A stretch of 64,000 nucleotides of DNA, from the IMG/VR virus record IMGVR_UViG_3300043418_000114, positions 248,001 to 312,000 of that record. One strand, given 5' to 3'. Positions 2,338-50,191 of this stretch are shown here, one piece after another (position 1 is the first letter of the stretch; the number at the start of each line of letters is the position of its first letter). The notes under the pieces are model-generated. The model was given only the letters and a program-made list of their open reading frames with translations, was not told the origin of the DNA and did not search any database. The translations under genes were made by a program, and so were the position numbers.

Positions 2338-3094
2338 ACCATTTGATTTAACAGGTAAAGTAGTTGCTGTAGTGGGCGGCAATCAAGGCATTGGCTTTGG
2401 AGTAGCCGAAGCATTAGCACAAGCAGGAGCTACCGTTGTTATCGGTGGACGCAGAACAGAATGGAATCAAAAAGCCGCTGAGAAAATTGGTGGTGATTAT
2501 ATTGACGTTGATGCCACTGTAGAAGAATCAGTTGTCAACTATATGAATACTGTAGTTGAGCGTCATGGCAGATTAGATGCTTGTTTCGCTATCTTGGGTG
2601 GTGCAACAATTAGTCCTGCCCCATTCGACTTAACCCCGCTTGAATGGTGGGAGAATGATATTCAAAAGAATCTAACTAGTGTATACTTGTGTTTCCGTGA
2701 AGCATCTAATCACATGATTAAGCTAGGAAACGGCGGGTCATTGGTTAGTATTGCATCTATTACATCAATTGGATCTAGTGCATATATTAGTGCATATGCA
2801 AGTGCTAAAGCAGGATTGATTGGATTGACTAATTCATTGTGTCGCAAGCTAGGAGAGTACAAGATTCGTATCAATAGCATCATGTCGGGCGTTATTGACA
2901 CAAAAGAATCACATGCTAACTTACCTGAACAGTTTAGACAACACATGATTAACCACTCAGTGTTTAATCGTCTAGGTGCAGTAGAAGACTTTGGTGGGCT
3001 TGCTGTGTATCTAGCTAGTGATGCATCATCATATCATACCGCTGATGTTATGTTACTCGACGGTGGACAAACAAAGACAATCATGGTAGTATGA
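2330..3094 (+). CDS. short-chain dehydrogenase/reductase (FabG-like)
   Basis: Rossmann motif VVGGNQGIG, catalytic Ser (IASITS), YxxxK (YASAK), IRINSI and C-terminal DGG. Confidence 0.92.
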   Translation: MYKPFDLTGKVVAVVGGNQGIGFGVAEALAQAGATVVIGGRRTEWNQKAAEKIGGDYIDVDATVEESVVNYMNTVVERHGRLDACFAILGGATISPAPFDLTPLEWWENDIQKNLTSVYLCFREASNHMIKLGNGGSLVSIASITSIGSSAYISAYASAKAGLIGLTNSLCRKLGEYKIRINSIMSGVIDTKESHANLPEQFRQHMINHSVFNRLGAVEDFGGLAVYLASDASSYHTADVMLLDGGQTKTIMVV

Positions 3095-4032
3095 CATTAG
3101 AACCTACTGTTTGGTATGCTGGTCGCAACAACTATAAGAAGCATACGTATGAACCTGACTACTTTGGGCCAAAGATGGGAAGATTCACTACTGAGTTACT
3201 TGATGTTGAGACCAGAGACTTAACCAATATCCATGATATCATCGCTGATGACTTAGGAATAAGACAAACCAAAACTGTCGAGGTCTTATTCAGTGGCGGT
3301 ATGGATAGCGAATGTGTAATTCGCAGTTGCCTACACAGTAAGATTCCAGTTCGTGCATTGACTGCTAGATTCATGGTTCGTGGCTATCCAGTCAATACAC
3401 ATGACTTGTATTACGCTGAGAAATTTTGCAGAGAACACAACGTAGAGCAAGTGTTTGTTGACTTGGATGCAGTTACTTTCTTTGAGAGTGGCAAGTTCGC
3501 TGATTATATTGTGCCTTACAACATTTGGTATCCGCATGTCGCAGTACACTTTTGGATATTCGAACAAGCTACTGGATTCCCTGTATTAGGTGGAGAGTAT
3601 AGTTGGCCATGGGCGACTGAAAAGATTATAAGCCCTCATAGAATTCCATTCATGTCATACGATAGATTCATGCATGACCGAGGTATACACGGGATTGGCA
3701 GTATGCTAGGCAATAGTCTAGAAAGTAACTGTTTATTCATTAAGAATCATCTACAAATCGTCCGTAGTGCGCCAGCAGGGTATTACAGAGGAGAAGATGA
3801 TAAGATAACCATACTCAAGCAAGTATTGTACAAGCAAATGGGGTTTGGTGACTTAGAATTGCGTATGAAAAACTACGGATGGGATATGGTAGGCAAAGAC
3901 ATATTTGATTTATGGAAATACTGCGGGGATGTAGTTGATCAATACGGTGAATCCAAGGCAGTCATTAAATGGGGCAATTTTATTGCCGAAGCAATGAATG
4001 GTGCACCAGGAAGTAATGACAGACACATATGA
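3091..4032 (+). CDS. PP-loop (adenine nucleotide alpha-hydrolase-like) protein
   Basis: VLFSGGMDSE matches the SGGxDS PP-loop. DLYYAEKFC resembles the helix that follows in this superfamily. Confidence 0.6.
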   Translation: MTLEPTVWYAGRNNYKKHTYEPDYFGPKMGRFTTELLDVETRDLTNIHDIIADDLGIRQTKTVEVLFSGGMDSECVIRSCLHSKIPVRALTARFMVRGYPVNTHDLYYAEKFCREHNVEQVFVDLDAVTFFESGKFADYIVPYNIWYPHVAVHFWIFEQATGFPVLGGEYSWPWATEKIISPHRIPFMSYDRFMHDRGIHGIGSMLGNSLESNCLFIKNHLQIVRSAPAGYYRGEDDKITILKQVLYKQMGFGDLELRMKNYGWDMVGKDIFDLWKYCGDVVDQYGESKAVIKWGNFIAEAMNGAPGSNDRHI

Positions 4033-6027: not shown

Positions 6028-7128
6028 TTAGAATAAATCTACCTTCTCCCACGGTAAATCTTTCTTGCCAAAGTGACCGTAGTTAGTTGTACGACCGTAG
6101 ATTGGTTTGAACAAATCAAACCGCTCAATGATGCCTTTTGGTGTCAAGTCTACATTGTCTTGTACCCACTTAGTTAAGTCTCGTGCTTGTTTAGCATCGG
6201 CAGTTTCAATGTAGAAACTCATTGGATCTTTCATACCAATAGCATAACTGACTTGACATGTTGCCCAGTTAGCACGACCTGTTGCTACAATGTTCTTAGC
6301 AATATAGCGCATCATGTACGCCGCCGAGCGGTCAACTTTCGTAGGATCTTTACCACTAAATGCACCACCGCCATGGGGACTATAGCCACCATAAGTATCA
6401 ACAATGATTTTTCTTCCGGTGAGTCCAGTGTCACCATCAGGACCACCAATAACAAAACGCCCAGTAGGATTAATGTAATACTCAGTATCATTGTCTAGAT
6501 ATTGTGGTGGTAAAATTGCACGAATAACTTCTTTTACCGCTAAACGTAAAGAATTGATTTCAGTGTCTTCGGTGTGTTGAGTAGAACATACAACTTTAGC
6601 GATGCGTTTTGGTGTGCCATCGTCGTTATATTCAAACGTTACTTGACTCTTGGCATCTGGTCCTAGGCATGTCATTGTGCCATTCTTTCGAAGTCTTGTT
6701 AATTCTTCAACAATACGATGTGACCAGTAGATTGCACTTGGCATGTAATTGTCTGTCTCGTTACATGCGTAGCCAAACATTAGACCTTGATCACCTGCAC
6801 CAAAGTTATCAGTGCCCAACGCAATGTCTGCACTCTGACCATGTAGTAAATTGGTCACTTGAACAGTTCGCCAATTAAAGCCTTTTTGTTCGTAACCAAT
6901 ATTCTTAATCACTTTACGTACAGCGGCGTCGACCTCTACATCATGTAGAATGCCTTTATATTCGCCTGCCAACACGACTCGATTAGTAGTAACAAGAGTC
7001 TCACATGCACAACGTAGTGCAGAGTCTTCCTTTGACATTACTAAATCCAAAATTGCATCAGATATGGCATCTGCCACTTTATCTGGATGTCCTTCACTAA
7101 CACTCTCACTTGTAAACAAATAACTCAT
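6028..7128 (-). CDS. metK: S-adenosylmethionine synthetase
   Basis: FTSESVSEGHPDK, GAGDQG, GRFVIGGP.GDTGLTGRKIIVDTYGG and GGGAFSGKD. Confidence 0.98.
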   Translation of the reverse strand: MSYLFTSESVSEGHPDKVADAISDAILDLVMSKEDSALRCACETLVTTNRVVLAGEYKGILHDVEVDAAVRKVIKNIGYEQKGFNWRTVQVTNLLHGQSADIALGTDNFGAGDQGLMFGYACNETDNYMPSAIYWSHRIVEELTRLRKNGTMTCLGPDAKSQVTFEYNDDGTPKRIAKVVCSTQHTEDTEINSLRLAVKEVIRAILPPQYLDNDTEYYINPTGRFVIGGPDGDTGLTGRKIIVDTYGGYSPHGGGAFSGKDPTKVDRSAAYMMRYIAKNIVATGRANWATCQVSYAIGMKDPMSFYIETADAKQARDLTKWVQDNVDLTPKGIIERFDLFKPIYGRTTNYGHFGKKDLPWEKVDLF

Positions 7129-7173
7129 TGATTTCCTTTGTTAGATATTTACTATGATATCAGTCTGCGTGAA

Positions 7174-7746
7174 TTATTTCAACTTTTTCGGCTTAGTTTT
7201 CTTGGGAGCTATACGTTTTACTTTACTGTAAAACACGTGATTGCCGATAGTAGCAACGTGATAATATGGCCAAATAGGATTAACGCTTGTATTATGAAAA
7301 AACAACGTTGAATTTGGAACAACATCCACATAACGATTGTTTACCATAACATCATACGCTACCTGTTTTGCTTGCTGATATCGTTGGTTGTTGACTGGTT
7401 CTCCTTTGCCTTCGCATACCCAACTAAACTGACAAATTATCTTGTCTTGTATAGTTGTTCTTTGGTATACCACTTGACATGGATTACTTCCAAAACCGTG
7501 ACGTACTCTGTTCAATACTACTCTCGCAACTGCGGCTTGACCATCGATTGATTCATGACCAGCTTCGTAGTATATGTTCTTTGCCATACATGCAATTTGT
7601 TTTGCATCTATTTTAGTCAAAGAAATCTGTGCTTGTTCGCCGTAATTGTTAGCTGGAGGAGCATTTACTTTGCTCGTTCCTAGTAAACATATTACTGCAA
7701 TTAAACCCAAAAATAACATCTTGGGTAGGTTACTCAGTATTTGCAT
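7174..7746 (-). CDS. SleB/Hydrolase_2-family cell wall hydrolase with N-terminal hydrophobic segment
   Basis: CMAKNIYYEA (catalytic Glu), VVLNRV, QFSW and IGNHVFY. I moved the start to ATG 7746 because GAAAGGA lies just upstream. Confidence 0.88.
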   Translation of the reverse strand: MQILSNLPKMLFLGLIAVICLLGTSKVNAPPANNYGEQAQISLTKIDAKQIACMAKNIYYEAGHESIDGQAAVARVVLNRVRHGFGSNPCQVVYQRTTIQDKIICQFSWVCEGKGEPVNNQRYQQAKQVAYDVMVNNRYVDVVPNSTLFFHNTSVNPIWPYYHVATIGNHVFYSKVKRIAPKKTKPKKLK

Positions 7747-41408: not shown

Positions 41409-44237
41409 TTAGGCCATAGAATAATTTAATATCTTGCCTTGAATGTCGTTGCTATCGCCTAGTTTGTTAATCACTTGATCTAGCTTATCTGACATGGTTT
41501 CTACCATATCTGCAAGTAATCCAACGACTTCATCTGGTCCCTGGGCTGGACTAGAAGTTCCACTTGATAACGTTTCTTTCTTGATATCTTTGAAGTTTGC
41601 TTGTGGCACAACTGCTTCTCTGCCATGTAACATCACTGGATATCCAGATGATGGACCTGAGAATACGCCACCAGTTCTTGCGCCTTTTAGTTCAGCGTGA
41701 ATATGTCCAGCAGTAGATTTACTAGATGGATTGTTATATTCGTCTTGGACATAAGTGATACCCATGTCCATTAGCATTGCTGATAGTTGTTTACCCTCGT
41801 CTGGAGTAGGTTTTCTATCTAATACAAAATCGAATGCTTTACCAGCAGTATGTCCGCTAGTAGGTGCCTTTTCATTATGGAATCCATCATTAAACGCGGA
41901 GAAATATTTAAAGCCAGGAATTCCCTGAACTTGTTTTGCAATTTCGATCAAGCGTGGATCGACACCTGCACCTTCTTTTTGTACATCGCCTTTTTTTAGA
42001 GTCAACCCAGCTTCTTGTAATGATTGGGCGGATGATGGCGTTGCTTGTGATGCACCAGCACGTTGACCTTGTCTTGCTAATTTTGGATTGCCAAATGCGG
42101 CACCACCGCCAGTAGTTCCATATGCTGGTGCCGCACCTGATGCCGCTGATGCGCCCGCACCGCCACTCTTGCCACGAGCATATTCATCGAATTTTTTAAC
42201 TGCCTCAGAGAATGTATCTGACGCTAGCTTGTTTACTCCTGCCGCCTTTGTGAATTCCAATGCGGCGGTATCTAGTTTAATTGCCGCGGCTTGCTGTGAG
42301 CGTGTTAGGTCGACGTTATCCTTCGTTGACTTATCTTTTGCTTCACGATCGGCTTTGACTTTGGCTTCGAATTCAGAAAGGAACTTGTCTTCATTAAAGT
42401 TAGCTCCAAGTTTCTTTTGTTCTGCGGCTTTAGCTTTCTCATAGTCACGTAGCTGGGCCCTAACATCACCAGCCACAGCAGATGAATCACCTGCCATGCC
42501 AGTTGTGTCTGCACCAAGTCTTCTAGCGGCAGATACTTCGCTAACTGATCTAACGCCACCTTCTAGTGCTTTAACTGAGCGACTTGCTGTGGTTCCTCTG
42601 CCCGCTTCAATGTCTTCCATCGCGCCGCCTCTGCGACCCAAGGCGCGTCTTGCCTCAACGGATTCCATTGTTGTTACTGCTTTACCAGCACCATAATATT
42701 GTGCTGTACCAGTTGCTAAACGTGTGAAGCCTTTAGCTTGTAGGGACGTAGCTACTTCGAGCGCACGTTCCATTTCCTGTAATCTTTGTTTTGCTCCAGT
42801 ATCACCGCGATCTGCTTTATCTTGCTCATTGAGCATACCAGCACGTAGCTGTTCAATCGCCATAACTGCGTTACGTGCATCTTCCTGTTCTTTGCGAGTT
42901 GCACCAGTAATAGCGGCAATTTTATCTAGTTCTTCGATATAGGTAGCTGTACTCTTGGCTAGCTCTTTTGCATTCTTTTCTTCTAATAAACCAAGTCTAG
43001 ACTGTAGAGCCATGTACTTGGCAGTGTGTTCGTACTGTTCATCTAGTGTGATGCCCATACGTTGGAACATCTTACTAGCTTCTGATTCATATAGATTAGC
43101 TGTTACATCAGTGAACTTAGTAAGACCGTCGGCCATTGTCGAGCCGAACATCTTCATTTCTTTTGAGTTTGCGGCTACAACTGCCTTAAACTTATCGAAC
43201 TCAGCTACAGTCATTCCCATCTTGTGTAGCTTGTCGGCAACGTCTTCCATGCCGCCACTAGCGGTCATTGACATTTTACCTAGTTCATTAAAGCCTGCAA
43301 ATAACTTATCATTAAGTTGTGCGGCAATCTCGTTCAATTCGGCAAGTACGCTTGCCGTTTCCGCGGCAGCCGATGTTGCCAAACCTGCCGCAACTGCTAC
43401 CCCGCCAACTGCAACCGCGGCAAGCGATAGGCCACCGGTGAATGGCGCAAGTAAAACAGCGACACCAATGATGCCGGCGCCAAGACTAGTTAGTGACGTA
43501 CCGACTGTACGCATTGCTTTAGTCATTTCATTTGTTGCGGCAGTAACACCCTTTGCGCCAACTGCCATGCCACGTTCACCGTTGATCAGAGCTTTGCCCA
43601 TAGCCATGGATGCTTTGGCCATGCCGGTAAGCGCACCAACTGCTAGGGTGCCAGCGGCTTCTAATAATACAAGACCACCAGTAGCTAGTTTGCTACCCTT
43701 AGCCATGTCAAATAGACTGTCTTTGCCTGCTCCAACGATAGAATTCAAGGAATCTAGTTGTCTGCCATGCTCGGTTGTGTAGCTTCTAATTGCTTCACCA
43801 GGAGCAGTCATTGCTTTAGCGACACGTGCGGCAGTTTTTGCCATGTCGTTGTAAGCACTGTTAGTTTGTTCTATTTTATCCAGTTCTTCGGATAATAGTT
43901 TCTGTTGCTGTCTGCGTAAAAAAGCCTCTTCACCAACATCTTTTTTGATCTGGTTGATTGCTTCTTTCTTTTGCTGATTCTCGGCTTTACGTAAGTCTAC
44001 GCTTTCTTTGATAATGCCAAGTTCATCTCTGTAATATCCAAGTTGCTTAATTTCAGCTTCACGGATATCTTTACTAGCAATCTTTTGTTTTCTATGGTCT
44101 TCTTCTTCCCAAGACGCAATTTTCTTATCTTTTTCAAACTGATCATTAATAAGTTTGGACTGGTTACCAAAAGATTCAGCCAGCTGGCGCATGCCTTCTG
44201 ACAATTCTTCCATCGTTCGTTTAATTTCTTCGTCCAT
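41409..44237 (-). CDS. tape-measure-like protein with C-terminal M15/LAS-type peptidase domain
   Basis: Helical A/K/E-rich body, a hydrophobic stretch (GAGIIGVAVLLAPFTGGLSLAAVAV), H-x6-D (GHTAGKAFD) plus HIH, and a GGVF.GP.SGYPV.LHG.EAVVP tail. Confidence 0.75.
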   Translation of the reverse strand: MDEEIKRTMEELSEGMRQLAESFGNQSKLINDQFEKDKKIASWEEEDHRKQKIASKDIREAEIKQLGYYRDELGIIKESVDLRKAENQQKKEAINQIKKDVGEEAFLRRQQQKLLSEELDKIEQTNSAYNDMAKTAARVAKAMTAPGEAIRSYTTEHGRQLDSLNSIVGAGKDSLFDMAKGSKLATGGLVLLEAAGTLAVGALTGMAKASMAMGKALINGERGMAVGAKGVTAATNEMTKAMRTVGTSLTSLGAGIIGVAVLLAPFTGGLSLAAVAVGGVAVAAGLATSAAAETASVLAELNEIAAQLNDKLFAGFNELGKMSMTASGGMEDVADKLHKMGMTVAEFDKFKAVVAANSKEMKMFGSTMADGLTKFTDVTANLYESEASKMFQRMGITLDEQYEHTAKYMALQSRLGLLEEKNAKELAKSTATYIEELDKIAAITGATRKEQEDARNAVMAIEQLRAGMLNEQDKADRGDTGAKQRLQEMERALEVATSLQAKGFTRLATGTAQYYGAGKAVTTMESVEARRALGRRGGAMEDIEAGRGTTASRSVKALEGGVRSVSEVSAARRLGADTTGMAGDSSAVAGDVRAQLRDYEKAKAAEQKKLGANFNEDKFLSEFEAKVKADREAKDKSTKDNVDLTRSQQAAAIKLDTAALEFTKAAGVNKLASDTFSEAVKKFDEYARGKSGGAGASAASGAAPAYGTTGGGAAFGNPKLARQGQRAGASQATPSSAQSLQEAGLTLKKGDVQKEGAGVDPRLIEIAKQVQGIPGFKYFSAFNDGFHNEKAPTSGHTAGKAFDFVLDRKPTPDEGKQLSAMLMDMGITYVQDEYNNPSSKSTAGHIHAELKGARTGGVFSGPSSGYPVMLHGREAVVPQANFKDIKKETLSSGTSSPAQGPDEVVGLLADMVETMSDKLDQVINKLGDSNDIQGKILNYSMA

Positions 44238-44303: not shown

Positions 44304-45125
44304 ATGAACAACCCACTACGCCAGTATTTCCGCAGACCAGCCCTGTTTATCTCTTTGCCTAGCAAAGGTCAGCACTATCCGGCTGGTGCGATTGAAGTTC
44401 CAGAAAATGGAGAATTTCCAGTCTATCCAATGACTGCTATTGATGAAATTACTGCCAAAACGCCTGATGCACTTTTTAACGGCAGTGCAGTAGCGGAGAT
44501 TATTAGAAGTTGTGTGCCTGCAATCAAAGACCCATGGTCTATTCCAGCTACTGACTTAGATGCCATTTTGATCGGCATTCGTGCCGCATCTACTGGCAGT
44601 GAGATGGACATTGAATCTGTCTGTCCTGCATGTGAAGAAGTCAGTAAGTACGGCGTGAATCTAGTAGGTCTTCTAAACGATATCAAGGGTGATGCATATC
44701 TAGAAACTCTAAAACTAGGTGAACTAGTATTCCACTTTAAGCCACTAAGCTATCGTGAAGTGAATCAAGGCAATCTAGGTCAATTTGAACTCCAACGTGA
44801 AATTGCACAGTTAGAATCAATTGAAGATGACGTAGAGCGCACAAAGAAGTCCAATGAAACCATGAAGAAATTGACGGAAATGAATATTGGATTCATGGCT
44901 AATACTATCTCTAAGATTGATTTGCCAAATGAATCAGTAACTGAAAATGAGTTTATCGTCGAATATCTACACGGCTGTGATCGTGCATCATATGATGCCA
45001 TTCGTACCCAGATCGTAAAGATGCGTGAATCTGTGAACATCAAGCCACTGAAAATCAAATGTGTAGCTTGTAATAACGAATACAATCAACCACTAGCATT
45101 GAATGTAACTGATTTTTTCGTATAA
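44304..45125 (+). CDS. baseplate hub assembly / tail chaperone protein (T4 gp26-like)
   Basis: NPLRQYFRRP...LPSKG, YPMTAIDE, D.DAILIGIR.AS.G, CPAC and C-terminal C..C. Strong SD AGGAG. Confidence 0.8.
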   Translation: MNNPLRQYFRRPALFISLPSKGQHYPAGAIEVPENGEFPVYPMTAIDEITAKTPDALFNGSAVAEIIRSCVPAIKDPWSIPATDLDAILIGIRAASTGSEMDIESVCPACEEVSKYGVNLVGLLNDIKGDAYLETLKLGELVFHFKPLSYREVNQGNLGQFELQREIAQLESIEDDVERTKKSNETMKKLTEMNIGFMANTISKIDLPNESVTENEFIVEYLHGCDRASYDAIRTQIVKMRESVNIKPLKIKCVACNNEYNQPLALNVTDFFV

Positions 45126-45349
45126 GGCTTCTATCTCTACCACCTGAAAAGATCAAGGCATTAATAGAAGGCATGAAAAATGAGTGCAATGACGTTAAGA
45201 AAAACGCACTCAGATTATCTTGGTATATGAGAGGTGGTGTTTCATATGAGGATGTATTGAATATGTCCCAGACGGAGAGAGAAGCCATCGGAGCCATTAT
45301 TGAAGATAACTTAGAAACAACTAAGAAATCTCAGTTGCCATTCTTCTGA
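45113..45349 (+). CDS. gp51-like frame, probably reached by -1 frameshift (not in the ORF track)
   Basis: The -1 frame reads FFRIRLLSLPPEKIKALIEGMKNECNDVKKNALRLSWYMRGGVSYEDVLNMSQTEREAIGAIIEDNLETTKKSQLPFF*. It opens exactly at T TTT TTC (45113-45119); the first ATG is at 45173. Confidence 0.72.
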   Translation, partial: FFRIRLLSLPPEKIKALIEGMKNECNDVKKNALRLSWYMRGGVSYEDVLNMSQTEREAIGAIIEDNLETTKKSQLPFF

Positions 45350-45362
45350 TACACAAACAAAT

Positions 45363-45384
45363 ATAGGTACGGAGACGTACCTAT
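45363..45384 (+). terminator. hairpin with GAGA tetraloop, likely terminator of the gp26/gp51-like unit
   Basis: ATAGGTACG-GAGA-CGTACCTAT followed by TCATTTAT. Confidence 0.6.
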
Positions 45385-45559
45385 TCATTTATCTAAATTA
45401 CCAAATTTCTATTTTGATTTTATTGTTGATTTAACACTTATTACCACTTAGAGATGAACTACGTTCATCTAACAACTCACTTCGTTCGTTGTTAATTTTC
45501 ATTCTTATTAATTCTAAACACTTTTATTAACTTATTTTAACTATCCATCTTTGACATAC

Positions 45560-45925
45560 ACTTGCCGCTTTGAAGACGTAGTAGTGCTTCCAGCACTACT
45601 ACAAAAAAAGGTCATTTGCCATGCCCGTCATTCGCATCATTTTTCTCCCGTTTAATTGCCGTCTTTGTGACACTAAACGCTACCGGTTGCTCTGTAAAGT
45701 TTATGGAGCTGTAGTGAGCCTATCAGATTAAACCAATGGGTTCTGACGACTCCGCAACGCACATTCTATAGCTCAAAAATGAAGTCGCTATAGACTTGTT
45801 GAAGGTTCGCTTTGTCGATTGCCTTCTCGGTATGCCGATGAATATTGCTACTCATCTATACTCCAGAATCTGACGGCACAGCCGAACTGTACAGTCTCAA
45901 GGAGGACTCCCAACGGAGCCAACGA
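45560..45925 (-). ncRNA. putative structured non-coding RNA (family not recognised)
   Basis: No long ORF on its own strand. At least five hairpins, and three pair fully (through G-U) only on the minus strand; one has a GCAA tetraloop. Visibly GC-richer than the flanks. Confidence 0.55.
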
Positions 45926-45958
45926 ATTGTTTATTTTAGATGTTAGATATAAGTGGGG

Positions 45959-46483
45959 TTATTTTGACTTGGTGTCGGTTGTTGAATATGTTTTAAGTAT
46001 TTCAGTGTTATGCATAAAGAAACTATCAAATTCCATGATTATCCAGTCTCCGTATTTTTTTGATGTATAATAGACAAAATTATCAGTCTTCCATGTTAGT
46101 TTGCTTTGAACAGCAATGTAACGACCTTTGCGATTAAACTTCATAAACAGAAGATTAACATCGTCAGGGTCAGCTACTTCTAGAAGTTGATCCAGCCAAG
46201 CATCTAATACTTTACATTCCCCTGTAAGTAAAAGATGAAATGGGAAGTCAGCATAGAATTTACATTCAATGTTCATTTTACTGAACGATTCACCAGGAAT
46301 AACATCGCCCTTGAAAGTGCGAATCTGTCCCTCGTGTAGTACTTCTTTGCGTACTTGATTCTTCCCACCCACATAAGCACCAGAACCAGGAGCGCGGATG
46401 AATGATTCACCATATGCCTCTGATAGATATTTTGCGATTTCTCGTTCAAAACCTGAACCTTTTGCTTTCTGTGGACTTGTCAT
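45959..46483 (-). CDS. Holliday-junction resolvase-like PD-(D/E)XK nuclease
   Basis: KAKGSGFEREIAKYL, GDVI and IECK. Confidence 0.8.
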   Translation of the reverse strand: MTSPQKAKGSGFEREIAKYLSEAYGESFIRAPGSGAYVGGKNQVRKEVLHEGQIRTFKGDVIPGESFSKMNIECKFYADFPFHLLLTGECKVLDAWLDQLLEVADPDDVNLLFMKFNRKGRYIAVQSKLTWKTDNFVYYTSKKYGDWIIMEFDSFFMHNTEILKTYSTTDTKSK

Positions 46484-46518: not shown

Positions 46519-48591
46519 TTATTCTGTCTCGGTAGCTGTGCTGTAGCTAGTGAAACCATTTTCTTTTATGACCTTGAGAACGTTTGGAACACGACCGGCT
46601 AGTTCTTCACGATGTGACACAAGCCAGATTGATTTGTGACGACGACGAGACATATCTTTTAGGATAGCTAGACTGTTTTCAACGCCCATTGTATCTAAGC
46701 CACTGTCGATCAATTCGTCAATGAATAGAGTATTGATAGGAGCGTATAAGTTTTCCCAAACATCACGGAAAGCAAAAGATAAGCCTAGAATCAAACGATT
46801 ACGTTCACCACGTGACAAGTTATCAAAGTCAAGTTCACGACCCAACTCAGTGATTTCAACTTGCAAATCGTTTTTAAATACAACATTGTGTGGCAAGCCA
46901 ATCTTATCAAGATAGTGTGTAAGTCGAGTATTCAGGTAACTCAAGTTCTGGTCAATGATCTTCTTACGAACAAACGAATCTTTACTGACCAACAAATCAA
47001 GCAAGAACTTTTGGTGTTCCATTGTTTTTGTCAATTCATTGATTCTGTCAAACTTTACTTCCTGAAGTGCATGAGACTCCATCTCTGCAATTTGATCTTG
47101 ATAAGGATCAGACTCACTCGCTTTGCTCTCAATCTGTAATAATAATGACGAGACCTTTGTTCGATGCTCAATTGCTTGGGCTTCGGTATCGTAATGAGTA
47201 GATGGACATGGGCCAAGAGTGACGCTAGCCGTATCAAAAAGCTGTTCACTGAATGGGTTATTTTCATTTTCCTTCTCCATGATTTGCTTTTTGATATTTT
47301 CAATCTCGGTAGATTGACGAATAGCTTCGGCTTCTGTCTTGTAATGAGTTGTTGGCTTCTCAATCACAAAGATTTCTTTGGATCGTAGTTCGTTCCACTC
47401 ATTCAATAATCTAGTTGCAGTCTCTTGAGCATCTGATAATAATTTTTTCTTATCTTCTAATACTTTGCCGTGTTGATCGTCATGGAAATGTTGACCACAT
47501 GCATAGCAAGTATGATCTTCCAATGATTGCACTTCTGCAACTAGCTTTTTAACTAGTGCATCTTCCTTGTCGATTTCTTTGGAAAGTCGTGCGATTTCTT
47601 TATCACGATCTGCTAGCTCTTTTGACTTTTGAATATGTTCTGCAAGGTCTTTGTGCGCCTGTAGTTCAGCAGTAAAATCAATATGACTTAACTCATCCAT
47701 TTTAAGTTTGAGTTGATCAATGTCTTTGTCTTGCTTTTGCATCCATGCAGTCTGTCTAGCGATCAATGCATCATATGCCTCTTGTTGTTTCTTTTTCTCG
47801 TTCCAAATAGTTAACTCTTTGTGAGCTAGTAATTCGGTATCGATATCAATTTTAATCAAGTCATCATATGACAGGGCAAGGTGAGATAAATCTTCATCAT
47901 GTTTTTTCAGCCATAGCGTTTGTCTACGCTTGAATGCTTCGATTTGTTCTTTAACTCGCTTGTTAGCTTCTTCGACTGCCTTAACACGGAACTCTTCCTG
48001 TTGAATTTCATCTTTGCTATTGCGAATCATTTCCTTGACAACTTCTGCTTTCTCTGATAGCAAAGTGATGCCCAACAATTGTTCAATGATTTCACGTTGT
48101 TCATTATTCTTAAGTGCCAAGAACGGTTGACTATAGGTATTCAAAACGACTATATGGCGGAACATTTCAGGTGTCATGTTAATAACACGTTCAATTGCCG
48201 CCTGAGTTTCTTTATTTTCGCCTTGCTGGTCTTCTGACGCTTTTTGTTGTTCATCATTCACGTAGAATTTCAACACATTGGGTTTACGTCCACGTTCGAT
48301 TTTGTACTTAGTACCATTGACCATGAATTCAAGTGTAACCATCATTGCTTTGCCGTTTGTACGATTGACAAGGTTATCTTTTCTGATATCATTGATTGGT
48401 ACACCAAAAAGAGCATACGACAGACCTTGAATTAGGGTGGTCTTGCCGGTACCATTACGAGCACCGTCGCCACCTAAGTCTAAGTTCTCGCCTAGAATGA
48501 GTGTTAATTCTTTTTTGTCAAAGTTGACTGCTTGTGTTACTTGCCCAATTGATAGGAAGTTGCGTAAAGTTATGTTTTGTAATGTAATCAT
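46519..48591 (-). CDS. gp46: recombination endonuclease ATPase subunit (gp46/SbcC/Rad50-like)
   Basis: Walker A NGTGKTT, Q-loop region, CYAC zinc hook, signature LSRGE, Walker B LFIDE and VSH. Confidence 0.95.
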   Translation of the reverse strand: MITLQNITLRNFLSIGQVTQAVNFDKKELTLILGENLDLGGDGARNGTGKTTLIQGLSYALFGVPINDIRKDNLVNRTNGKAMMVTLEFMVNGTKYKIERGRKPNVLKFYVNDEQQKASEDQQGENKETQAAIERVINMTPEMFRHIVVLNTYSQPFLALKNNEQREIIEQLLGITLLSEKAEVVKEMIRNSKDEIQQEEFRVKAVEEANKRVKEQIEAFKRRQTLWLKKHDEDLSHLALSYDDLIKIDIDTELLAHKELTIWNEKKKQQEAYDALIARQTAWMQKQDKDIDQLKLKMDELSHIDFTAELQAHKDLAEHIQKSKELADRDKEIARLSKEIDKEDALVKKLVAEVQSLEDHTCYACGQHFHDDQHGKVLEDKKKLLSDAQETATRLLNEWNELRSKEIFVIEKPTTHYKTEAEAIRQSTEIENIKKQIMEKENENNPFSEQLFDTASVTLGPCPSTHYDTEAQAIEHRTKVSSLLLQIESKASESDPYQDQIAEMESHALQEVKFDRINELTKTMEHQKFLLDLLVSKDSFVRKKIIDQNLSYLNTRLTHYLDKIGLPHNVVFKNDLQVEITELGRELDFDNLSRGERNRLILGLSFAFRDVWENLYAPINTLFIDELIDSGLDTMGVENSLAILKDMSRRRHKSIWLVSHREELAGRVPNVLKVIKENGFTSYSTATETE

Positions 48592-49178
48592 AGTTTTTCA
48601 AAATATTCATGTAGCTCTGGGATAAATCTAGCACTGATTATTACCCTAGTGTCTTCCCTCTCGCTGTATGGTCTATGTGGTATAGACACATTGACCCAAG
48701 CAGGAGTTGATGCATCTAATCTATCAATTTCTGTGTATGGCAAATCGTATTTTATCGTTCTTGCGCTGGTCAAGTCTGGATGATCCGCTATGATAGGTGC
48801 ATACTCTATAGTGGCATCGTACCATACAGTATATGTCCCCTCGCAGTTGAACAATGGTATATTCAATCCACATACTCTTTGTTCAGGATCAACGTGATCA
48901 ATATGAATGACTGGAATATTTGATGCTAATTTTGATGCTGTTGCAAGTAATGATATATCCCATCTATCAAAGAATCCAGTACTCTTTATCATGTCAACAT
49001 ATGTTGGAGAATAACTAGTAACTTCTTCCTTCGTCAATGGAATAAATTCCGACATTGGTGTTTGAGTGCCATCAAAACACGCAGGAACATATTTTTCAAC
49101 TAAGGGTTTTAATTCTTGTTGAATTTTTTCTAAATTATTTACTGTAGCTGTTTTGTATGTCCAGGATGGAATGTTCAT
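48588..49178 (-). CDS. putative 2OG-Fe(II) dioxygenase-like (DSBH) protein
   Basis: HxD (IHID), LNIPL, a distal His (SIPH) and RVIIS. ATGA overlaps on both sides. Confidence 0.55.
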   Translation of the reverse strand: MNIPSWTYKTATVNNLEKIQQELKPLVEKYVPACFDGTQTPMSEFIPLTKEEVTSYSPTYVDMIKSTGFFDRWDISLLATASKLASNIPVIHIDHVDPEQRVCGLNIPLFNCEGTYTVWYDATIEYAPIIADHPDLTSARTIKYDLPYTEIDRLDASTPAWVNVSIPHRPYSEREDTRVIISARFIPELHEYFEKL

Positions 49179-50191
49179 AAATTGTTATAAATGTCCAGTA
49201 GAATTTTTTTGTCGAATGAGTTAGATTCGATTGCATTGATTTGGTCGATGATAATTTGATCAACTGATTCAAATTTAATGCCGTCACTATTTTGTCCTTG
49301 TTCAATCGCTTCGCCCTTTACTGGAATCAACGACATTTCACGTAGTTTGTGTTCAGGGATTAGAGTCTCACGAATGAAGTTTGCTTCTTCATAACTAATA
49401 TCAATGTCTAGATGTACTCTAACATGTGAATCAATTAGTAGCAATCCTTCTGGATTCTCTAAGATTTCTGACAATTTGTAGACACGATAGATTGGCTGAC
49501 GTGGCCAAGAATAAAACTCTGGCTCTTGGTCCCACGCTAGTATCATCATGCCACGCGCATCATCACCAGCGTCTGCGTAGTTGTGAGGGAAGGCATTGCC
49601 AATGTACCAGATGTTTTTCTGTGCTTGTCGCTTGTGAAAATGACCAGAAAAGACTTTCTCAAACTGTCCAACGTGATCAGTATTTAATTCACCGTGATCT
49701 GGCATTTCTACCATGGCATTCATGTAGAAGTGTGGCAATTCAAAGTGACCAAACAGATACTTGCCAGACATTTTCTGTAATTTTTTGTAATCGTCGGCAA
49801 CTAGCCAAGGCGCAATCGTTACATTACCTTCTTGAAAGAAGTCGTTGATAATCTTGACATTAGGCAAGTGCTTGCCCCACTCAACTGAGTGAATGTCACG
49901 ACGATCACGGTAGTACAAGTCGTGATTGCCTGGAATAAAATAAACAGTTTCAAAACTATTACTCAGCTTCTCCAATGATTGGAGACCAAACTGTAGGGTT
50001 TGAATGTTAATACTAGCACGATGATGATTCCAATCACCTAGAAAAATGCAAGTCTCGCATCCTTCTGATTGTGCTTTCTTAATGAACCAATCGACAAAAT
50101 TGGCACAGTCTTGATTATGTTGCAAACTGTTTGACTTTAATCCAAAATGAATGTCAGTGAAAACAGCGGCTTTCTTAAATAGGTTGCTCAT
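49175..50191 (-). CDS. gp47: recombination endonuclease nuclease subunit (gp47/SbcD/Mre11-like)
   Basis: DIHFG, GDWNH, GNHD, GHFE and SGHFH metallophosphoesterase motifs. Confidence 0.95.
   Translation of the reverse strand: MSNLFKKAAVFTDIHFGLKSNSLQHNQDCANFVDWFIKKAQSEGCETCIFLGDWNHHRASINIQTLQFGLQSLEKLSNSFETVYFIPGNHDLYYRDRRDIHSVEWGKHLPNVKIINDFFQEGNVTIAPWLVADDYKKLQKMSGKYLFGHFELPHFYMNAMVEMPDHGELNTDHVGQFEKVFSGHFHKRQAQKNIWYIGNAFPHNYADAGDDARGMMILAWDQEPEFYSWPRQPIYRVYKLSEILENPEGLLLIDSHVRVHLDIDISYEEANFIRETLIPEHKLREMSLIPVKGEAIEQGQNSDGIKFESVDQIIIDQINAIESNSFDKKILLDIYNNL

Follow-up and report, generated by a model that had tools for sequence, protein, structure and literature searches.

A large pseudoknotted RNA at a fixed locus in uncultivated aquatic jumbo phages

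Large, intricately folded RNAs of unknown function are rare, and each one solved so far has opened a field, as RNase P, group I and II introns, HEARO and the RNA cages GOLLD and ROOL illustrate. GOLLD and ROOL are phage-borne RNAs of hundreds of nucleotides with many helices, several pseudoknots, GNRA-type loops and a disordered, poorly conserved internal linker; neither is the leader of a downstream gene and their function is unknown (PMC12286853). HEARO was likewise a large pseudoknotted RNA found strictly next to a nuclease gene, and was long of unknown function before it proved to be the guide RNA of IscB. OLE RNA, of similar size class and with densely conserved junctions, is found in Firmicutes with the partner genes oapA, oapB and oapC and likely acts as an RNP or oligomer, whereas ColE1 RNA II and T4 origin transcripts are structured transcripts followed by an A/T-rich stretch near replication and recombination genes. 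Finally, thousands of shorter candidate structured RNAs, averaging 67 nt, have been mined from IMG/VR (Fremin et al. 2023, PMC10690425). Here we describe an RNA of about 365-475 nt that matches none of the described families we searched and is conserved at the same genomic spot in hundreds of uncultivated aquatic jumbo phages.

A conserved gene-free locus between convergent genes

We analyzed a 64,000-nt stretch (the window) of the 364-kb viral contig IMGVR_UViG_3300043418_000114. A crude tiling of ORFs indicated that the 609-nt stretch 45350-45958 is the only real gene-free gap above 250 nt in the window. On one side, read on the minus strand, lie an SbcD-like gene (49175-50191), a 196-aa ORF, an SbcC-like gene (46519-48591) and a 174-aa PDDEXK (PF24608)/RusA-like resolvase gene (45959-46483). 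On the other side, and converging with these, are a 58-aa ORF (orf58, 45173-45349, plus strand) and a gp26-like baseplate hub gene (44304-45125, plus strand). The 58-aa ORF has no Pfam or PHROG match yet is conserved in 190 of 200 related loci (52-100% identity), and by position it could be a gp51-like hub assembly factor. A 942-aa ORF at 41409-44237 (minus strand), also without a Pfam or PHROG hit but conserved in relatives (23-100% identity), occupies the position of a virion structural protein in PA5oct. GC content at 45600-45900 is 0.42-0.45, which is richer than the immediate flanks (0.30-0.33) but equal to the coding average.

To ask whether the gap is conserved, we searched IMG/VR with the resolvase protein, which gave 181 relatives; of the 80 loci fetched, every one carries the downstream element at 69-77% nucleotide identity over about 490 nt. 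An RNA core pattern recovered more than 120 further loci from IMG/VR, and a similar pattern recovered more than 120 metagenome contigs from lakes and from TARA and ENA marine assemblies, 119 of 120 of which have the RNA. In total more than 300 homologous loci were obtained, and the first 200 (viral) hold 129 distinct RNA sequences, about 74 effective. Among loci with enough flank, the PDDEXK gene is directly upstream on the same strand in 170 of 170 viral and 73 of 73 metagenome cases, and the orf58/gp26 genes converge downstream in 176 of 176 and 87 of 87. The flanking proteins have diverged to 57% (PDDEXK) and 37% (gp26). Contigs reach 525 kb and carry T4-like recombination and baseplate genes; the family is confined to this one clade of jumbo phages, in which the RNA is as conserved as the core proteins.

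Outside this clade we found no copy. The core pattern gave three hits in 596 Gb representing one genome for each of 185,579 bacterial and archaeal species, none with the RNA or the flanking proteins, so these are chance. Blastn of the window copy and of a divergent copy (L102) against the 50,697 phage records of INPHARED returned only short chance hits. The nearest cultured relatives of the flanking proteins are jumbo phages (gp26 is about 32% identical to Atu_ph07 and PA5oct, and PDDEXK 47% identical to Salicola SCTP-2), yet neither nhmmer with filters off nor R1, a covariance model of the central domain of the RNA, found it in Atu_ph07, PA5oct, SCTP-2 or Phosso, where the PDDEXK homologue lives without it. 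In Agrobacterium phage Atu_ph07 this homologue (6068-6560, plus strand, of locus L201) appears to be split or mis-annotated in the RefSeq record as the small ORFs gp688 and gp689 on opposite strands, tblastn covering residues 1-117 only. The syntenic region of Pseudomonas phage PA5oct does contain a 660-nt unannotated A/T-rich gap near gp26 (6531-7195 of locus L202), but this shows no similarity to the family by nhmmer or R1. Sinorhizobium phage Phosso has a 1014-nt unannotated gap between RNase HI and the PDDEXK/HJ-resolvase homologue (2987-4000 of locus L207; PV764938 229759-230772), unique in INPHARED, which holds a hairpin whose loop (GAGCGAAUAGCGAAG) resembles that of P12 described below and a sub-threshold Rfam EGFOA match (29 bits, E 0.005); it may be another unannotated structured RNA in a cultured jumbo phage.

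Covariation defines a double-pseudoknot fold on the minus strand

Several lines of evidence indicate that selection acts on an RNA read from the minus strand of 45925-45562. Conservation comes in blocks rather than with a 3-base period, and no conserved ORF is present, which rejects a protein-coding reading. Folding of the single sequence is only modestly better than shuffles (z = -2.8 on the minus strand and -2.1 on the plus strand), so the weight of proof is comparative. RNAalifold on 65 close sequences predicted 90 pairs, 49 of them with compensatory double changes. We then built a structure by hand, including two pseudoknots, and evaluated it on 46 sequences less than 86% identical to each other. 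In this set 87.6% of cells form standard pairs, against 30-42% when the 3' partners are slid by 1-3 columns; 65 of 94 pairs have changes on both sides; and the covariation score is 0.381 against 0.166 in shuffles, with 0 of 500 shuffles reaching any of the five measures. In the well-aligned helices G-U/U-G cells outnumber A-C/C-A cells 157 to 17, fixing the strand as the original prediction had argued from three G-U pairs, which are real.

That prediction, of a novel structured ncRNA read on the minus strand, is supported. All seven of its hairpins exist and are kept by compensatory changes in homologues: 45920-45905, 45892-45876, 45856-45837, GAAGG/CCUUC, 45794-45765, CGUUUA/UAAACG and 45602-45578. 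Its eighth helix, AGACU/AGUCU, proposed to close a multibranch domain, is not supported because its bases sit in other covarying helices (P3 and P7), and the prediction missed both pseudoknots and a 3' extension to about 45452. A long-range helix proposed by RNAalifold (columns 58-61/383-386 and 71-75/373-378 of alignment A1) was likewise dropped in favor of P2, which covaries.

Read 5' to 3' on the minus strand, the RNA begins with P1 (45920-45905; 6 bp, loop GUUG), in which 5 of 6 pairs show double changes and one pair is G-U in 21 of 65 sequences. P2 (CUCC 45904-01 with GGAG 45864-61) is 98.4% paired, with CUCU/AGAG and other double changes, and encloses P3 (45896-45872), with double changes in 8 of 9 pairs. 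P4 (45856-45837) is capped by a GNRA-type loop, GCAA here and GCGA, GUGA or GUAA in relatives (G-Y-R-A in most homologues); 7 of its 8 pairs have 2-39 double changes among the 65 close homologues, although it is badly aligned in the distant set (34.7% paired) because stem length varies. The central domain (45832-45681) is closed by P5 (UACCG 45832-28 with CGGUA 45685-81) and carries P6 (45826-45801, almost invariant), P7 (45799-45761) and P8 (45758-54 with 45690-86), all 98-100% paired with many double changes. P8 holds the variable hairpin P9 (45752-45716) and the invariant junctions ACUACAG (45715-09) and AAACUUUACAG. R1 scores 146.5 bits here and nowhere else in the window.

Two pseudoknots lock the fold. 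In PK1, 45708-05 pairs with 45648-45 across the 3' strands of P8 and P5 and hairpin P10 (45679-45649); 4 of 4 PK1 pairs (90.2% paired) and 10 of 11 P10 pairs show double changes, and 45708-45645 emerged as mutual-information partners. In PK2, the P7 loop 45782-77 pairs with 45642-37 (5 of 6 pairs with double changes, 97.1% paired), again among the top mutual-information partners. The 3' strands of PK1 and PK2 lie two bases apart on one 12-nt strand. Mutual information adds a tertiary pair, G45709-C45784 (GC 85, AU 22, GU 20), and a possible base triple or alternative pair, as base 45698 follows the identity of 45832 and both are complementary to 45681.

The 3' portion contains P11 (45602-45578), an 11-12 bp hairpin whose stem sequence is almost invariant across the family while the loop varies. 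In the upper 7 pairs, 5 never vary and pairing is 100%; with the 4-pair lower extension, 11 pairs are 92.7% paired. P11 occurs once in the window. It is not an intrinsic terminator, as no U-run follows it: the run of T lies 5' of the stem on the minus strand and a run of A follows it on the plus strand. P11 is flanked by segment iii (45629-45608), a small hairpin whose loop carries the motif K-C-AU-GGCAA, and by segment iv (45571-45562), a single-stranded second copy, K-C-GGCAA. A variable A/U-rich linker with length polymorphism (45561-45495) leads to twin hairpins, P12 (45493-45471) and P13 (45470-45452), both covarying stems. P12 has a GAA loop and two tandem G-A/A-G pairs kept in 124 and 119 of 129 sequences, and shows G-U 31 against A-C 11, which favors the minus strand; its loop motif occurs once in the window. 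P13 is strand-ambiguous and may double as terminator of the convergent operon. A terminator scan of the region called only a bidirectional intrinsic-terminator-like hairpin at 45363-45384, between the RNA and orf58, beside or within which a short motif of unknown role (TAAATGAATAG, minus strand, 45381-45393) is conserved across loci and in some relatives forms the hairpin loop.

Just 5' of P1, an A/T-rich motif (45925-45950) with the consensus TAAAAATT is near-invariant in the 65 close homologues, with TTTTAAC further upstream in a subset. It is a candidate dedicated promoter but is not established as one: the composite motif is found in only 34 of 187 loci by strict pattern and no sigma-70-like site was called here. 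The T4 late-promoter octamer TATAAATA is absent from all 64 kb (4.8 expected by chance) despite the T4-like late-gene neighbors, and the late promoter of this clade is probably different.

An unusual feature is that segments iii and iv change together while keeping identity rather than complementarity. The K position is G/G in 65 sequences, U/U in 36 and C/C in 9. The following 5-mer is GGCAA in both copies in most phages and becomes GGUAA (18 of 21), AGCAU (5 of 5), GAUAA (3 of 3), AGUAA, AGCAG or GGCAU in both copies in others, with several cases in which the copies differ only by C/U (AGC/AGU and AAC/AAU). Chance recurrence of a 5-mer in the 60-nt window is about 5%. No column inside the RNA covaries as a complement of either copy: the only recurrent complement, the P8 5' strand, does not follow the motif changes, and a linker UUACC motif leaves an A-C mismatch in the main type.

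Possible functions

The simplest reading is that both copies of the motif are read by one outside partner. We propose, in the absence of transcript data and by inference alone, that this is a discrete trans-acting RNA rather than an mRNA leader, working as a rigid folded scaffold, alone, as a multimer or with protein, that displays the two motifs on either side of P11 to two copies, or two sites, of a common partner. That partner is most probably a nucleic acid read by base pairing, since tolerance of C/U differences points to pairing with a G. We consider this proposal as a whole about as likely as not, and are less sure of the partner details: no partner for segments iii and iv was found in the loci, and a protein partner such as a dimer, a symmetric RNA-RNA contact or competing alternative pairings could give the same co-variation. 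It is not a 5' leader, because the next downstream genes are on the opposite strand.

Among the alternatives, which sequence analysis cannot narrow decisively, a new large ribozyme that cuts itself to form a 3' end or processes another phage or host RNA is possible, though less likely. About 68 invariant columns are concentrated in unpaired junctions (ACUACAG, AAACUUUACAG, AUGUGCGUUGC) while stems vary freely, and together with the two pseudoknots, the tertiary pair and the possible triple this would suit a catalytic core equally well, an architecture typical of ribozymes such as glmS, HDV, RNase P and group I. However, no ribozyme model in Rfam matches, there is no exon context for splicing, no tRNA genes lie nearby for an RNase P-like role, and non-catalytic RNAs such as GOLLD, ROOL and OLE show equal complexity.

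Only slightly less tenable is a cis-acting regulator, a riboswitch-like sensor or attenuator at the end of the recombination operon, in which segments iii and iv compete for one partner and the fold decides whether transcription or stability continues into the region antisense to orf58/gp26. Read-through would indeed be antisense to these genes, competing pairings produce same-sequence segments that change together, and P12, P13 and a terminator follow. Against this, no complementary third segment covaries with iii or iv, P11 and P13 lack U-runs on the minus strand, no minus-strand terminator adjoins the core, no Rfam riboswitch matches, and a 365-nt core with two pseudoknots is far larger than known aptamers.

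A replication-origin primer RNA, forming a persistent hybrid in the downstream linker as ColE1 RNA II does, appears unlikely. The linker is 65-75% A+T, and the position between recombination genes (SbcCD, resolvase) and baseplate hub genes is analogous to that of T4 oriF (uvsY), which lies next to genes 25 and 26. Yet there is no GC-skew turning point at the locus within the 64 kb, T4 origins need no conserved RNA tertiary fold, and selection is plainly on RNA pairing including pseudoknots, which a primer does not need.

It is similarly doubtful that the RNA is a partner of the adjacent PDDEXK nuclease, with segments iii and iv as twin short guides for a dimeric enzyme. The two genes are invariably adjacent, about 46 nt apart, the two exposed motifs are identical, and resolvase-type PDDEXK enzymes act as dimers on two like strands. 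But the protein is a minimal PF24608 domain with no extra RNA-binding part, its homologues at 38-47% identity in SCTP-2, PA5oct, Phosso and Atu_ph07 have no such RNA next to them, and because the whole neighborhood is syntenic adjacency alone says little. More broadly, though less likely than the scaffold proposal, the RNA could be a new class of large catalytic or guide-like RNA, either a ribozyme whose double-pseudoknot core acts on a substrate held by the twin motifs or an RNA that directs the neighboring dimeric nuclease to two like strands; in both cases it would be a core replication/recombination component of a whole clade of jumbo phages. A DNA-level element (a packaging site or protein-binding palindromes) or a chance cluster of hairpins is effectively refuted by the G-U asymmetry, tandem G-A pairs, pseudoknots and compensatory changes, even though P11 is a perfect inverted repeat of invariant sequence.

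Comparison with described RNAs

Searches against the 4227 models of Rfam 15 gave no match at gathering scores on the whole window, only two chance hits outside the element at E up to 10 on 45300-46000, and only one chance sRNA hit at E up to 5 on 20 diverse homologues. ARAGORN found no tRNA or tmRNA gene in the 64 kb. The element is not a group I or II intron, as it lies between two complete convergent genes (the PDDEXK domain covers profile positions 2-159 of 164) and no intron model matches. No RNase P model matches either; the ACAGAGCAACCGG stretch only superficially recalls CR-IV, and its pairing partners here are P8 and P5. In the literature searched, including the GOLLD/ROOL papers and a 2026 preprint on noncoding sequence space, no description was found. 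Short pieces of this RNA may be among the 8,495 IMG/VR candidates, but the text of that study, its supplements aside, describes no 365-475-nt pseudoknotted RNA at a resolvase/gp26 junction (PMC10690425). We regard this as a new RNA class, widespread in lake and ocean viromes.

Of the systems introduced above, ColE1 RNA II and the T4 origin transcripts share the structured transcript followed by an A/T-rich stretch, but lack conserved pseudoknotted cores. OLE RNA shares the size class and dense junction conservation, but there is no model match and no oapA, oapB or oapC gene here. HEARO shares the strict adjacency to a nuclease gene, but the neighbor here is a resolvase-like protein rather than IscB or TnpB, no HEARO model matches, and there is no hypervariable guide at an end, the conserved twin motifs being only 5-7 nt. 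Compared with ROOL and GOLLD, the RNA has no sequence or structure match to their Rfam models, even with permissive filters, is shorter than GOLLD, is not next to tRNA islands (no tRNA in the 64 kb) and holds a fixed syntenic position in one phage clade rather than being scattered. Nevertheless, in its phage origin, its many helices and pseudoknots, its GNRA-type loop and its variable linker, we infer that it is in kind closest to these large ornate RNAs, without a detectable relationship to them.
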